From sequence record PQ898399.1: DNA of 64,000 bases, one strand, 5' to 3'. The position numbers were made by a program, and so were the translations under genes. The notes beneath the pieces were generated by a model that saw only the letters and a list, made by a program, of their open reading frames with translations, had not been told where the DNA came from and searched no databases. Positions 1,334-58,786 of this stretch are shown in pieces. The first letter of the stretch is position 1; the number at the start of each line of letters is the position of its first letter.

Positions 1334-1430
1334 AGAGTGTAACGGTAAGTCCATTTATCGGAAGTGCGAACCGCGCGATAGCTGCCAATGCATAAATGGT
1401 TACTCCGTACAAGACTGGGACTCTCACTCT
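1334..1430 (+). ncRNA. tRNA-like structured RNA, homologous to 58684-58780
   Basis: 76/97 ungapped identity to the copy in the N4-like segment; acceptor-like stem agagtg/cactct; 8-bp ccatttat/ataaatgg stem. Confidence 0.8.
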
Positions 1431-4296: not shown

Positions 4297-4523
4297 AGAA
4301 AATCTTAAAGAAAAGATACATTAGAAAGGTCGAACGGCTCCGTTCCTTTGCGCCTGGTTGGCCATTAGAGATTTTAATCGCTGACCGTCATCCAAGATAT
4401 AATGATGAATGGCGGCATCATAAGAAATGGGATTCATATTGCCGTACTAAAGCAGGTCGTTTAGATGGCTCGTATGAATATTATTTTGATAAGAAACCTT
4501 CTAGAATATCTCACGGTAATTAA
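4293..4523 (+). CDS. hypothetical basic protein
   Basis: ATGA-type overlap. Confidence 0.65.
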   Translation: MKKILKKRYIRKVERLRSFAPGWPLEILIADRHPRYNDEWRHHKKWDSYCRTKAGRLDGSYEYYFDKKPSRISHGN

Positions 4524-4973
4524 ATGGACATTGGCTCTGGAAGTTCATATCCTTCTTGTGCTTTAAGTAACTTTGCACCACATGCTTTCGTTTATGACGG
4601 TGTAGAATGTGCTTCAATGGAGGGATTTTTACAATCCCTCAAATTTTCTAACCCTGAAATGCAAGCTCATGTTTGCACATTGGTTGGAAAGGCAGCAAAG
4701 TTCAAAGGTAAGAAGAAGCGTTGGTGGCCTACTCAAACACTTTATTGGAAGGGTGTTCCTATTCATCGAGCATCTGAAGCATACCAGAATCTTTTAACTG
4801 GAGCTTATGACGCACTTGCTCAAAACACTGGATTCCAAAAAGCATTGATTGCTACTCGTAACGCAACATTAACCCACAGTATGGGCAAGAACAAAATCTC
4901 TGAAACAGTTTTGACTGAAAAGGAATTTTGTAATCAGCTCTATCGTTTACGCAAAATGCTTCAAGAGAAATAG
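4524..4973 (+). CDS. NADAR-family ADP-ribosylhydrolase (T4 gp30.3-like)
   Basis: PSCALSNFA..F..DG...MEGFLQSLK, TLYW.G, QN.GF..AL, L.HSM, T.LTE.EF motifs as in T4 gp30.3. Confidence 0.8.
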   Translation: MDIGSGSSYPSCALSNFAPHAFVYDGVECASMEGFLQSLKFSNPEMQAHVCTLVGKAAKFKGKKKRWWPTQTLYWKGVPIHRASEAYQNLLTGAYDALAQNTGFQKALIATRNATLTHSMGKNKISETVLTEKEFCNQLYRLRKMLQEK

Positions 4974-4976
4974 ATT

Positions 4977-5159
4977 ATGATTAATCTGTACCGACATCCT
5001 GATATGAATGTTAGTTATCTCGTTGATACTGAATCAAATCGAGTTCTTACATATTGGCATGATAGCTGCTTAAACACAACTCATCTTGACCCGATTGTAA
5101 GAAAGAATTTAATTCTTCTTGAGGAAGATACTCAAGTTGAACCTGCTCTTCATTTTTGA
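4977..5159 (+). CDS. hypothetical protein
   Basis: ORF track, operon context. Confidence 0.6.
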   Translation: MINLYRHPDMNVSYLVDTESNRVLTYWHDSCLNTTHLDPIVRKNLILLEEDTQVEPALHF

Positions 5160-5212
5160 TGAGTATTTCAAAATCAACTGGTTTACTCAAGTTGATATGT
5201 AATAAATAAAGT

Positions 5213-5340
5213 TGTTCAGTGCTGGAATTGGTAGACAAGGGGTCCAACACCTTTTGAGTTCGCATATTGAATCATATGCTGACGATGGTGGTAAAACGCC
5301 GCAAGAACATGCTTACAGGTTCGAGTCCTGTCTGAACACA
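5213..5340 (+). ncRNA. expanded tRNA-like RNA (~128 nt)
   Basis: acceptor tgttcag/ctgaaca, Leu-type D-arm ctggaattggtagac, T-arm acagg-TTCGAGT-cctgt, but non-canonical anticodon arm and large branched insert. Confidence 0.75.
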
Positions 5341-5342
5341 CT

Positions 5343-5420
5343 CGGGGTATAGCTCAGCTGGATAGAGCAGTGGACTTCTAATCCACAGGTCGACGGGTTC
5401 GAATCCCTCTACCTCGACCA
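5343..5420 (+). tRNA. tRNA-Arg(TCT)
   Basis: gtgga-CTTCTAA-tccac, CCA; one bulged C in T-stem. Confidence 0.9.
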
Positions 5421-5424
5421 ATTT

Positions 5425-5509
5425 GCTAGGGTTGCTGAGTGGCCAAAGGCAGCGGATTGCAAATCCGCCGGGTATCCCTTCGTGAGTTCGAATCTCACTC
5501 CTAGCTCCA
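5425..5509 (+). tRNA. tRNA-Cys(GCA) with enlarged variable arm
   Basis: gcgga-TTGCAAA-tccgc; variable ggg-tat-ccc; CCA. Confidence 0.9.
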
Positions 5510-5515
5510 AATTTC

Positions 5516-5600
5516 GCATCAATGGTGGAACTGGTATACACAGAAGACTTAAAATCTTCCGCCGAAAGGATTGAGGGTTCGAATCCCTCTTGATGCACCA
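5516..5600 (+). tRNA. tRNA-Leu(TAA)
   Basis: gaaga-CTTAAAA-tcttc, variable arm, CCA. Confidence 0.95.
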
Positions 5601-5601
5601 A

Positions 5602-5677
5602 GCCGGTTTAGCTCAGTTGGTAGAGCAGCTCATTTGTAATGAGAGGGTCAGCGGTTCGAATCCGTTAACCGGCACCA
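5602..5677 (+). tRNA. tRNA-Thr(TGT)
   Basis: ctca-TTTGTAA-tgag, CCA. Confidence 0.95.
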
Positions 5678-5692
5678 AATGAGGAAAACACA

Positions 5693-5893
5693 ATGCGTTT
5701 AGTTCAAGTGCGTTATAAAATCGCAGAATACATGGAAGACTGCGGAAGAATTAAAGAAGAACTGTTCACAGTAGATGCTGACTCTGATGGAGAAGCTGAA
5801 CAGAAAGTTTATGATTATTTCAATAATATCTCTGACCCATATGGAACGAGTTATTTTGTTTACGATTGCGATGCGGTTAAGCATCTAAGCTAA
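5693..5893 (+). CDS. hypothetical protein
   Basis: GAGGA RBS. Confidence 0.7.
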   Translation: MRLVQVRYKIAEYMEDCGRIKEELFTVDADSDGEAEQKVYDYFNNISDPYGTSYFVYDCDAVKHLS

Positions 5894-47944: not shown

Positions 47945-48413
47945 GTTTATTCGAAGATGACGTTCAGCTGAACGAACACCAGATTGCTTGGTATAGTAAA
48001 GATGAGGCAGAGATTAAACGTCTCTCTGATACTTTCAAAGAAACAGCAGAAAATGAATTCTTCGCAATAATCGGTGCAATTAACGAGAAGAAAGATATCT
48101 CAATCGGAACTCGTGATTATTCGAAATTCATGGTAGAAAATGCTCTATCTCAATTTCCAGAATGTATGCCATCAGTTTATGTGATGAACTTAGTTGGTTC
48201 TGGCTTGTCAGATGAAGCTCACTTCAATTATCTGAAAGCGGCTGTTCCTCGTGGACGCCGTTTTGGTAAGTGGGCTAAGTTAAACGAGAGCGCCCAGGAG
48301 ACACTCATTCTGAAAGTATTGATGAATCATTATACAATCAATATCAATGACGCTGAGCGTTATAGAGTGACTCTAGCCAACAAAAATAAACTGTCTGAGA
48401 CATTAAAACGTCT
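47941..48413 (+). CDS. 62: clamp loader small subunit, truncated by assembly gap
   Basis: MSLFEDD..LNEHQ.AW, ENALSQ.PEC, AVPRG.R.GKWAK. Confidence 0.93.
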
Positions 48414-48513: not shown

Positions 48514-50626
48514 GTGATGCACCACCAGTCCACCAGGACAACACCACAGCAATGACCACCACTACAGCTTTAAAAATACCAGTTTGATACCATTTGGTTT
48601 TAACTGTGTACTCAGTACCAATGAGGATGTGGGTAGCCCGCGCAAACAATGTTTCTCGGTCGTGAGCAGAGAACATTTTACGGAAAGCATAATCCAGAGG
48701 AACCATCAGGTTCTCGTTATCGCCACCTTTGCTAATGTTCTTACCACCTACCTTGAAACGTCCATTGAGGTTGTAAGCACGAACTTCCTCATACTGAGTT
48801 GGTGAACTCTGGATACGATAAAAATGGTAGCTAACATCCTGGTTTACATAGGTAGTGCTGGTAGATCCGTCACTATTAGTTACAGTAGTTCCTATCTTCC
48901 GTTGCCCTGTGCCACGACCTGATGCAGTAAAACCGACCGGGCCAATAACACCAGTGATCTTGCGATAACCGATAGCATCCAGTGAGTTACCGATCTCAGT
49001 AGCTACGTCTGTTGTAGTCATCGTACAGCCCTGGTGTGCAGCCCATGTAGTGTACTCATCTGCTGGCTGTGAAGGGGCAAATACAATAGGGTTACGCATA
49101 CCGTAAAGGATGCGGAAATACTGGAAGAGGTATTCCTGTTCCAGGGTATTAGTCGTGTTAGCAGGTACACACTGTACCATCAGTACAGAACGGATCTTGC
49201 TGAGGGAACTCAAGCTGTTGTAGATCTGATCTGTAATTTCAAGCCAGGGTAAATCAAGTTTATTGCCCAGCTTAATGGAATCTTTATAAGGCTTCTTACC
49301 TACAAAGTTACCCTTGTCCAGACGGTCACCATTAAGACGGAAATACATCCGTGGATAACCTTTACCGAAATCAGCTACCGGGGTACTGGTAATCCCATCC
49401 AGTGATGGATAAGAACCGGAGCCATACTGGTAGGTGAAGTAGTTAATAGCTACCCCACCACTGGAAGTAGGGTAAGTAAAGCAGACTTGGAAATAGTCTT
49501 CATCACTACCTACCGATTCACCAGAAGGATCCAATGGTGCGTTAGGGTCAATGTTACCCATGTCGTCATCATCCAGCACAGTCTCAGTATCTACATTCTG
49601 ATCAGGGATAAAGTCATACTGACCAAAGCCCATCTGGATTCTGGCAATAATATCTACGACTACCCGACGTGTAGTAATAACCCGACTGACGGTTGTAGTC
49701 ACTTCAGTAATGACACCAGTAGTGGGATCTGTAGTAGACGTAGTAGTTGGTGGATCGCTTTCGTTAGTCGTACTGCTATCAGTTTGCGTATCTGTCTGGC
49801 TGATGATCCCAGTTGTAGGTGGAGTCTGTCCATTCCAGTCAGTTGTATTACTGGTTTGGTCAGAGGAACTCGTAGTAGTTTCTTCATCATAACCACCAGA
49901 GCCATTAGGCGTCTTAACCGTAGTGTCTACCTTAGTGGTGGTCACTGTGGTAATACGCTTTACACCGAGGAAACGAGTAGCGTACTGAAGATCCACATAG
50001 TTGGAATCAGTAGTGCTTGTGCCATCCAAAGTATCAGCACGGGAATAGTTAGCACTCCGGGTAGGCGTAGCCCCACCTGTAGGTGGATAACCCCAGTGTT
50101 GTAATACATAGGGATCGGCATCAAGCACTGTCTTGGTAGTGAGCATATTCCTGGCATCATGCAGGTAAGCATCTGCACCCAATGAAGCTCTTAAACCAGT
50201 GAGTTTATTGTCAGTGGCTGTATATCCATAATTGGAAATGAGCAGTTGCCACATGGCATGACGCAGGTTGATTGGCCCGAACTTGCTGTATACGTATGAC
50301 AGGTCATTACGCCCGGTAAGCGAAACCAGAACATCATTGAAGGAACCAGAGTCTGTGAAGTCAGTCTGGGCTACCACAGTGGATTTACCCACACCGTAGT
50401 AATACTTATCTGGTTTCGATGCCCAGCGGTAAGCTGCATTCCACTTAACAGCGTTACTCTTCCAGCCATACTGGATCATGAGGTCAGCCAGTGGGGTAGT
50501 GTTCTCTTCGTCAAGGACGTAAGTAGTAATAGCCTGTCCAATTACGTCTGGCAGATATTCATCTTCTATAAGACGTGAATACGAGAAGTCTCGGTACGTC
50601 TTCTTCTTGCTGCCAAATAAACCCAT
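48514..50626 (-). CDS. N4 gp53-like virion structural protein, 3'-truncated
   Basis: MGLFGSKKKTY start; Thr-rich region; N4 synteny. Confidence 0.8.
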
Positions 50627-58521: not shown

Positions 58522-58597
58522 TGGGGTATAGCCAAGTGGTTACGGCACCGGTCTTTGATATCGGCATTCTCTGGTTCGAATCCAGATACCCCATCCA
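58522..58597 (+). tRNA. tRNA-Gln(TTG)
   Basis: ccggt-CTTTGAT-atcgg, CCA. Confidence 0.93.
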
Positions 58598-58600
58598 AAT

Positions 58601-58678
58601 TACCCGGTAGGCTTAATGGTTAAGACGCCCCCAGAACTTAAGACTGGGATACAGGTTCGAATCCTGTCCGGGTAACCA
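58601..58678 (+). tRNA. atypical tRNA, 9-nt anticodon loop (TAA or TTA reading)
   Basis: tacccgg/ccgggta acceptor, perfect T-arm, cccag-AACTTAAGA-ctggg, 2-nt variable region. Confidence 0.7.
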
Positions 58679-58680
58679 AT

Positions 58681-58786
58681 TTCAGAGTGTAACGGTAAAT
58701 CCAACGGTCGGATGTGCGAATCGCGCGATAGCTGCCAATGTACTTGAGGTAAACCCGTACAAGGTTAGGATCCTCACTCTGAACCA
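58681..58786 (+). ncRNA. tRNA-like structured RNA with CCA end, homologous to 1334-1430
   Basis: tcagagtg/cactctga + ACCA; agg-TTAGGAT-cct T-like arm; 76/97 identity to T4-side copy. Confidence 0.82.

Follow-up and report, generated by a model that had tools for sequence, protein, structure and literature searches.

Small RNAs of the T4 species 1 and species 2 type have long been known in phage tRNA arrays, and the hairpin in the leader of the lambda N gene has been regarded as nothing more than an RNase III site. The two T4 species, RNAC and RNAD (encoded by rnaC and rnaD), are stable RNAs from the tRNA region whose roles are unexplained (PMC3014915, PMC9697503). The RNA element described here resembles them in being small, in lying within a tRNA array on the tRNA strand and in having tRNA-like spacers, and it shares with RNAC an acceptor-like closure combined with a large insert. 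It differs from both in having no sequence or model similarity to either; homology to rnaC or rnaD was rejected by alignment as well as with the covariance model R1 introduced below, and T4 itself does not carry the element. A further difference is that RNAC keeps a canonical T arm, because of which ARAGORN miscalls RNAC as a tRNA, whereas the element does not.

Comparable ends are also found in tmRNA, in the Y-RNA-like YrlA and in phage RNAs processed by RNase P, such as C4 of P1 and P7; in these RNAs the 5' and 3' ends pair into an acceptor-like helix that stacks on a hairpin and in some cases is followed by CCA. In contrast to these, the element has neither a tag ORF nor a Ro-binding stem, its adjoining hairpin has a stem of only 3 bp, and it finds no match in Rfam. 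Self-cleaving theta ribozymes are known next to phage tRNAs. In lambda, where pL is an immediate-early promoter, the known role of the N-leader hairpin is the cis control of N translation; RNase III reportedly processes this leader and thereby modulates N translation.

The stretch analysed here, referred to as the window, comprises 64,000 nt (positions 124001–188000) of record PQ898399.1 (Enterobacter phage SonariX; 248,734 bp). Karamvirus-like matches end at position 48413 of the window (172,413 of the record), N4-like matches begin by about position 50393, and the GC content rises from 0.39 to 0.47 across approximately 48.4–50.4 kb; PQ898399.1 looks like a T4-like genome fused end to end with an N4-like one. 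Each of the two parts contains one copy of the element, here called copy A and copy B, with the following neighbours:

1254–1333, + strand: tRNA-Gln upstream of copy A (1254–1329, ending in CCA; ARAGORN and Rfam), then the spacer AATT
1334–1430, + strand: copy A, the whole RNA element, Karamvirus-type (covariance-model match 1328–1434, 113 bits; gap-free match to copy B)
2184–2211, + strand: intrinsic-terminator-like hairpin closing the tRNA array of copy A
58522–58597, + strand: tRNA-Gln upstream of copy B (ARAGORN/Rfam runs)
58601–58675, + strand: tRNA-like gene upstream of copy B (Rfam tRNA model)
58684–58780, + strand: copy B, N4-like type (covariance-model match 58678–58784, 113 bits)
58784–58786, + strand: CCA of copy B, 3 nt past the 3' strand of its closing helix P1 and 1 nt past the 8-bp extended helix

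The two copies align without gaps at 76 of 97 identical positions, a count made by hand in the original prediction and confirmed by our recount. Among all 97-nt diagonals between the two tRNA regions of the window, this one ranks first, followed by those of the tRNA-Gln (71) and tRNA-Asp (67) genes. The claim that the two phages share nothing else has to be withdrawn, since similar tRNA genes are common to both, and in each phage the element has a tRNA-Gln upstream of it. With up to three mismatches allowed, the window contains two occurrences of a 21-nt core pattern, compared with none in 100 shuffles. Both compensatory changes described earlier are present at their positions: pair 81:89 is A:T in copy A (1414:1422) and G:C in copy B (58764:58772), and pair 24:60 is likewise A:T in copy A (1357:1393) and G:C in copy B (58707:58743). 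The acceptor-like closure AGAGTG/CACTCT, abutting a small 3' hairpin, was also found in both copies (1334–1339/1425–1430 and 58684–58689/58775–58780). Cross-contamination during assembly had been named as a possible source of the similarity. Among the matches listed, however, six other Karamvirus isolates carry copy A with 99% or full identity, and copy B is identical in the separate N4-like isolate vB_Ecl_SABI; since each copy thus recurs independently in other isolates of the lineage it belongs to, an assembly artefact is ruled out for both.

The family to which both copies belong is well supported as a group of structured phage RNAs of approximately 97–115 nt that have previously not been described. 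Its common fold is a three-way junction at which the closing helix P1 meets a long arm and the hairpin P3, which has a 3-bp stem and a 7-nt loop; the long arm consists of P2, an internal loop and P2b, and is capped by a nearly invariant 33-nt core containing a small hairpin, P5. The elements of the fold in copy A, followed by their counterparts in copy B, are:

1334–1339, + strand: P1 5' strand, closing acceptor-like helix, pairing with 1425–1430 (7/7 pairs covary, 98% of cells paired)
1340–1345, + strand: P2 5' strand, with 1340 pairing with 1409, A1341 bulged and 1342–1345 pairing with 1405–1408 (4/4 pairs covary, 100% paired)
1351–1358, + strand: P2b 5' strand, pairing with 1392–1399 (a different complementary strand pair in each lineage)
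1359–1391, + strand: nearly invariant apical core (mean pairwise identity 0.97 among six lytic lineages)
1364–1368 with 1372–1376, + strand: P5 hairpin inside the core (3' strand varies by lineage and stays complementary)
1392–1399, + strand: P2b 3' strand (evidence as for 1351–1358)
1405–1409, + strand: P2 3' strand (P2 covariation plus the extra pair 13:105)
1410–1411, + strand: dinucleotide CA, the only part of the junction left unpaired (conserved to at least 97% among the distinct copies of alignment A5)
1412–1424, + strand: P3 hairpin, stem 1412–1414/1422–1424 and loop 1415–1421 (3/3 pairs covary, 91% paired)
1425–1430, + strand: P1 3' strand, followed by TCTT and no CCA (same P1 covariation)
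58684–58689/58775–58780, + strand: P1 of copy B, 8 bp when extended with 58682–58683/58781–58782
58709–58741, + strand: core of copy B
58762–58774, + strand: P3 of copy B

The structure was initially derived from 21 lytic copies with RNAalifold and a structure assignment of our own; in these copies 88% of the cells are paired, as opposed to 31–50% with slid partners. The pair counts refer to 34 distinct copies from an alignment of 35. Overall, 88–89% of the cells are paired, compared with 28–58% when the partners are slid, and 22 of the 27 pairs change on both sides, with a covariation score reached by none of 500 shuffles, so that the covariation anticipated among homologues was indeed found. 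An extra P2 pair (columns 13:105 of A5) is Watson–Crick in 100% of cases with three pair types and brings P2 against P1, leaving only the CA of the junction unpaired. The P2b columns are only 66–69% paired because of register shifts and bulges. P1 measures 6–9 bp in the lytic copies (6 bp in copy A, 8 bp in copy B), and P3 abuts its 3' strand with zero spacer. Some pairs, for example in P1 of Certrevirus, are G-U pairs that fit only the + strand RNA, which assigns the element to that strand. Single-sequence folding of the lytic copies gives z-scores of −0.4 to −1.0, within the range of shuffles; the value of −4.3 for lambda is due to its long basal helix. Since single-sequence energies are unexceptional, thermodynamic stability was discarded as evidence and the structural case rests on covariation, by which the RNA fold is well supported as real. 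A candidate tertiary pair between the last base of the core and position 3 of the P3 loop, which appeared to covary in the 34 copies, was ruled out by additional Gelderlandvirus and lambdoid copies showing all four combinations, including C-A.

With regard to the tRNA class, ARAGORN and Rfam 15 detected no tRNA or other family at 1334–1430 or 58684–58780, even at E ≤ 10, and the same runs do call the tRNAs that flank both copies. The element obtained no cloverleaf score and not even a partial match to the Rfam tRNA model RF00005; known riboswitches, ribozymes, tmRNA, YrlA and C4 gave no match in this region of the window at E ≤ 10, and the copies from lambda, PS2 and the uncultured lineage L098 gave none against Rfam 15 at E ≤ 1. 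The novelty expected for the RNA thus stands, and the statement that a large conserved domain replaces the D and anticodon arms agrees with both the shared fold and the missing tRNA call. What the element does have in common with tRNA acceptor ends is a helix of paired 5' and 3' ends that directly abuts a hairpin, both of which covary. A canonical T arm, with a 5-bp stem and a 7-nt loop bearing the signature, is not present: the P3 stem has 3 bp, and its loop, 7 nt long in all lineages, has A at position 6 as the only invariant base. The T-like arm of the original prediction is therefore retained as a small hairpin and not as a canonical T arm; likewise, the predicted tRNA elbow and acceptor survives as an acceptor-like P1 abutting a hairpin, with the closer tRNA likeness lying in the core and not in P3. 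A CCA follows P1 at a distance of 0–4 nt in the N4-like (copy B, Klebsiella), Certrevirus, PS2, L159 and lambda/434 copies and is absent past the Ackermannviridae copies and, as had been noted, past copy A, where TCTT follows position 1430. Because P3 is two base pairs short of a T stem and CCA is absent from copy A and the Ackermannviridae copies, tRNA-like processing is uncertain.

The spacer of 4 nt in front of copy A corresponds to the tRNA–tRNA spacers of the same array, which measure 1–6 nt, and to the tRNA–RNAC spacer, and no promoter-like site was found on the + strand between positions 1 and 2246. Together with the shared strand and the strong terminator-like hairpin after the array, this speaks for co-transcription of copy A with the tRNAs. 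The same array contains, 370 nt downstream of copy A, an RNAC homologue (1799–1937) that is identical to T4 rnaC at 117 of 139 positions, and ARAGORN miscalls 1844–1938 within this region as a 95-nt tRNA-Met. A partial resemblance to T4 rnaD (34 of 46 aligned positions) was observed at about 700–745, after tRNA-Asn. In the N4-like part, the tRNA-like gene at 58601–58675, situated between tRNA-Gln and copy B, scores 33 bits with the Rfam tRNA model and is not called by ARAGORN; it has an irregular anticodon loop, and its 3' end, which adjoins the element, is kept in N4-like relatives.

The core is far more conserved than the helices that carry it. Among the six lytic lineages, identity in the helix columns is 0.55, compared with 0.97 for the 33 core columns, which, together with the covarying helices, bears out the earlier proposal of an unannotated structured RNA under strong selection. 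Within the core, the invariant 5' strand of P5 faces four different complementary 3' strands, and P5 fits all core variants better than an alternative hairpin between CGG, the first three core bases, and the three bases after the P5 loop, which fails in the L098/L159 variant. Positions 1364–1387 have the length and the ends of the last 24 nt of a tRNA, beginning with a T-loop-like string and terminating in GCCA. In exact register with tRNA 3' ends, this segment reaches 17 of 24 identities at best and 12.5 of 24 on average; comparisons between tRNAs over 24 nt yield 14.9 ± 2.3, and among random 24-mers from the window a score of 17 of 24 is reached by only 0.05%. P5 would, however, pair part of the T-loop-like bases, which weakens the idea of a literal mimic of a tRNA end. 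A free T-loop in the core was given up owing to this conflict and is kept as a sequence likeness only, and we regard the resemblance of the core to a tRNA end as a likeness rather than a demonstrated mimic. No significant antisense pairing or mimicry was detected towards E. coli 16S, 23S and 5S rRNA (rrnH) and three tRNAs, with duplex energies and local alignments all within the shuffle range; a weak 5S rRNA likeness needs four gaps and was rejected. Searching E. coli genomes with blastn gave no match, a result that is uninformative for short pairings. A sigma-54-like promoter on the opposite strand was dismissed as well, because its spacing fits the main core variant and, judged by eye, not the three other variants.

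A blastn search of 50,697 phage records recovered the element from approximately 125 GenBank phage records (124–128). The copies of Karamvirus and Gelderlandvirus match over the full length with 94–100% identity, those of N4-like Klebsiella and Enterobacter phages with about 80%, and those of Certrevirus and the unclassified Pectobacterium phage POP18 with 78–85%; the core of the Ackermannviridae copies is 97% identical, and Muldoonvirus PS2 carries a variant core. All copies found by blastn in lytic phages are on the tRNA strand and within the tRNA array, an arrangement seen in at least seven lytic or uncultured lineages, including the uncultured lineage L098/L109. In the uncultured lineage L159 the element is located in a leader region and is followed by ACCAATT. 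All identified hosts of the phages carrying it are Enterobacterales. Relaxed core patterns recovered dozens of prophage-sized IMG/VR contigs in which the element lies between a boxB-type hairpin and an ORF with lambda N-like first codons, and blastn identifies these prophage-type copies as lambda, 434 and their relatives. Of 5426 complete E. coli genomes, 529 carry the lambda-type copy, which is never annotated there. With at least eight phage lineages carrying the element, and lambda and 434 having it as the N-leader hairpin, the original description of an RNA shared by two phage families was too narrow.

The element is never annotated as such in these records and is either bare or overlaid by ORFs labelled 'hypothetical protein'. 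Such ORFs overlap it in S16, F1M1E, Tribble and several Klebsiella Ackermannviridae records, an example being gp75 of Salmonella phage S16 (L038, 2549–3130); their annotated start or the entire ORF may be over-called. Among the papers searched, none describes the RNA family. Cellular homologues were considered and rejected, since all ten bacterial genome matches to a strict core pattern were chance hits in GC-rich DNA with dissimilar flanks; in metagenomes, the same pattern gave six matches, three of them true phage copies and three due to chance. Beside the tRNA array of L109, a gene on the − strand (4482–5882) encodes a 466-aa DUF2828/DUF7788 'RNA-binding protein' (phrog_850) with homologues in 708 phage records from many hosts. 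This Ro-like protein was considered as a general partner of the RNA and discarded, as neither the window nor any other of the element loci examined contains it.

The relationship to the lambda leader was assessed with the covariance model R1, which was built from lytic copies alone, without lambda or 434 in the training set. R1 recovered 434-type leaders over their full length with E-values of about 1e-13 and lambda itself (J02459, 35387–35498) with 33.2 bits and an E-value of 1.6e-7 in a small database with filters off; by construction, E-values of R1 are rough. In the extracted loci, the match scored 59.6 bits in L041 and 33.2 bits in L075 (lambda), both over model positions 1–107. The copies of L098, L159 and PS2 were also recovered over their full length, and no match was obtained in the T4 tRNA region or in the leaders of Sf6 and HK633. 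A connection of the lambda-type copy with N4-like phages and PS2 was also made by blastn. In lambda (L075), the element occupies positions 263–374, between nutL (227–243) and the ATG of N at position 401, and the match covers the core, P2, P3 and the CA of the junction. Together, these comparisons give good support to the view that the element forms the apical part of the large nutL–N hairpin in lambda and 434. As in the lytic phages, it is on the transcript strand, and it comes early in the transcript. It differs from the window copies, which belong to tRNA arrays and do not stand between nutL and N, in its position within an mRNA leader; its basal helix has approximately 15–16 bp compared with 6–9 bp in the lytic copies, and the middle of its core is 1 nt shorter and of other sequence. 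A closing helix of about 15 bp suits RNase III. The N leaders of Sf6 and HK633 keep lambda's basal helix and carry an unrelated apical insert of approximately 190 nt, which shows that the apical domain is exchangeable and dispensable for N as such.

Based on these findings, we propose the following hypothetical scenario, to which we would give about an even chance: the element is a cargo RNA on a processing frame that is released by host enzymes and acts through its invariant core, in which (i) the element would be synthesised within a longer RNA, from which host enzymes would excise it as a separate molecule; (ii) in tRNA arrays, release would fall to the tRNA-maturation enzymes (RNase P, RNase E and 3' exonucleases, as for T4 RNAC), made possible by the minihelix of P1 and P3, the tRNA-like spacers and, in most lineages, a CCA downstream; (iii) in lambda and 434, the lengthened closing helix would hand the release to RNase III; (iv) P1 and P3 would serve as a frame for processing and stability, with the invariant core as the cargo; and (v) the core would act after release, most likely by binding a conserved host macromolecule of Enterobacterales. 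The exchangeable apical domain of N leaders supports such a modular arrangement, and the register-exact likeness to a tRNA 3' end would point to a factor that reads tRNA ends. We consider it unlikely, though worth stating, that the core is a displayed mimic of the tRNA 3' end, from the T-loop through NCCA, on an interchangeable frame, which at least eight lineages would release early to occupy a host enzyme or an immune sensor.

A purely cis-acting module that directs RNase III, RNase E or RNase P to cut adjoining RNAs apart, or tunes the downstream gene, and whose excised fragment is functionless, is a doubtful reading that nonetheless deserves weight. The lambda hairpin stands between nutL and the N start codon and has an established role in cis, the element directly precedes an ORF in N4-like phages and in L159, and it always lies inside longer transcription units. 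Such a module would, however, leave unexplained why 33 apical bases are nearly invariant while the helices drift; the Sf6-type leaders suggest that the basal helix alone serves the cis role whatever insert it bears, and in most tRNA arrays the next gene is merely another tRNA. A decaying tRNA relic, or a DNA-level homing-endonuclease or recombination site spread horizontally without RNA function, is contradicted by the G-U pairs that fit one strand alone and by the compensatory changes seen in four helices, which demand an RNA fold. Such an origin would fit the resemblance of the core to a tRNA 3' end and the homing endonucleases in these tRNA regions (segB in that of T4; HNH-type or endonuclease ORFs near L109 and L159), but 97% core identity across families is not expected of a relic, and we regard this reading as the least probable of all.

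As a possible function, the original prediction put forward an RNA that mimics tRNA and serves as a decoy or inhibitor of anti-phage tRNA nucleases or of defences that sense tRNA. Such a role would be in keeping with an acceptor-like P1 that abuts a hairpin, with CCA in most lineages, with a core resembling a tRNA 3' end, with the early expression expected from the immediate-early lambda pL promoter and with hosts that, where identified, are all Enterobacterales. We nevertheless judge it quite improbable, because PrrC, RloC and PARIS-type nucleases act on the anticodon arm, a part that the element lacks, and because the element does not match the Rfam tRNA model even in part. A ligand-binding riboswitch or a self-cleaving ribozyme appears very improbable: aptamers and ribozymes typically combine a compact junction with an invariant core, and theta ribozymes adjoin phage tRNAs, but no Rfam model matches at E ≤ 10 and the lambda N leader requires RNase III for its processing. 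The ligand-binding RNA suggested earlier also loses ground in that a conserved downstream expression platform, or a conserved downstream gene, is absent.

If the copies represent one conserved module, Rfam misses a common phage RNA family, present in approximately 125 lytic records and in about one-tenth of the complete genomes of E. coli, many of the ORFs called as 'hypothetical protein' across the element are wrong, and the function of the module is open to study in the best-understood phage, lambda. If the core were in addition a true mimic of the tRNA end, the lambda N-leader hairpin would be a cargo-delivery device and not only an RNase III switch, and RNAs of the T4 RNAC/RNAD type would share the same strategy. 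The alternative inserts of the Sf6 type suggest a general 'socket and cargo' arrangement of phage RNAs. The insert in Sf6 (AF547987.1; L174, approximately 246–446) and HK633 (L173) is strongly folded (z = −4.2) and has no Rfam match; it recurs with 99–100% identity in 19 lambdoid records, whereas lytic phages lack it. Within the window, further small RNAs may lie in the long inter-tRNA gaps at 786–937, 1014–1170 and 1431–1543. In Enterobacter phage F1M1E (L002, approximately 1404–1495) and in L003, the Certrevirus copies are immediately preceded by an unannotated stretch with a tRNA-like end, in which a T-arm-like string is followed by CCA, possibly a further tRNA-like RNA.
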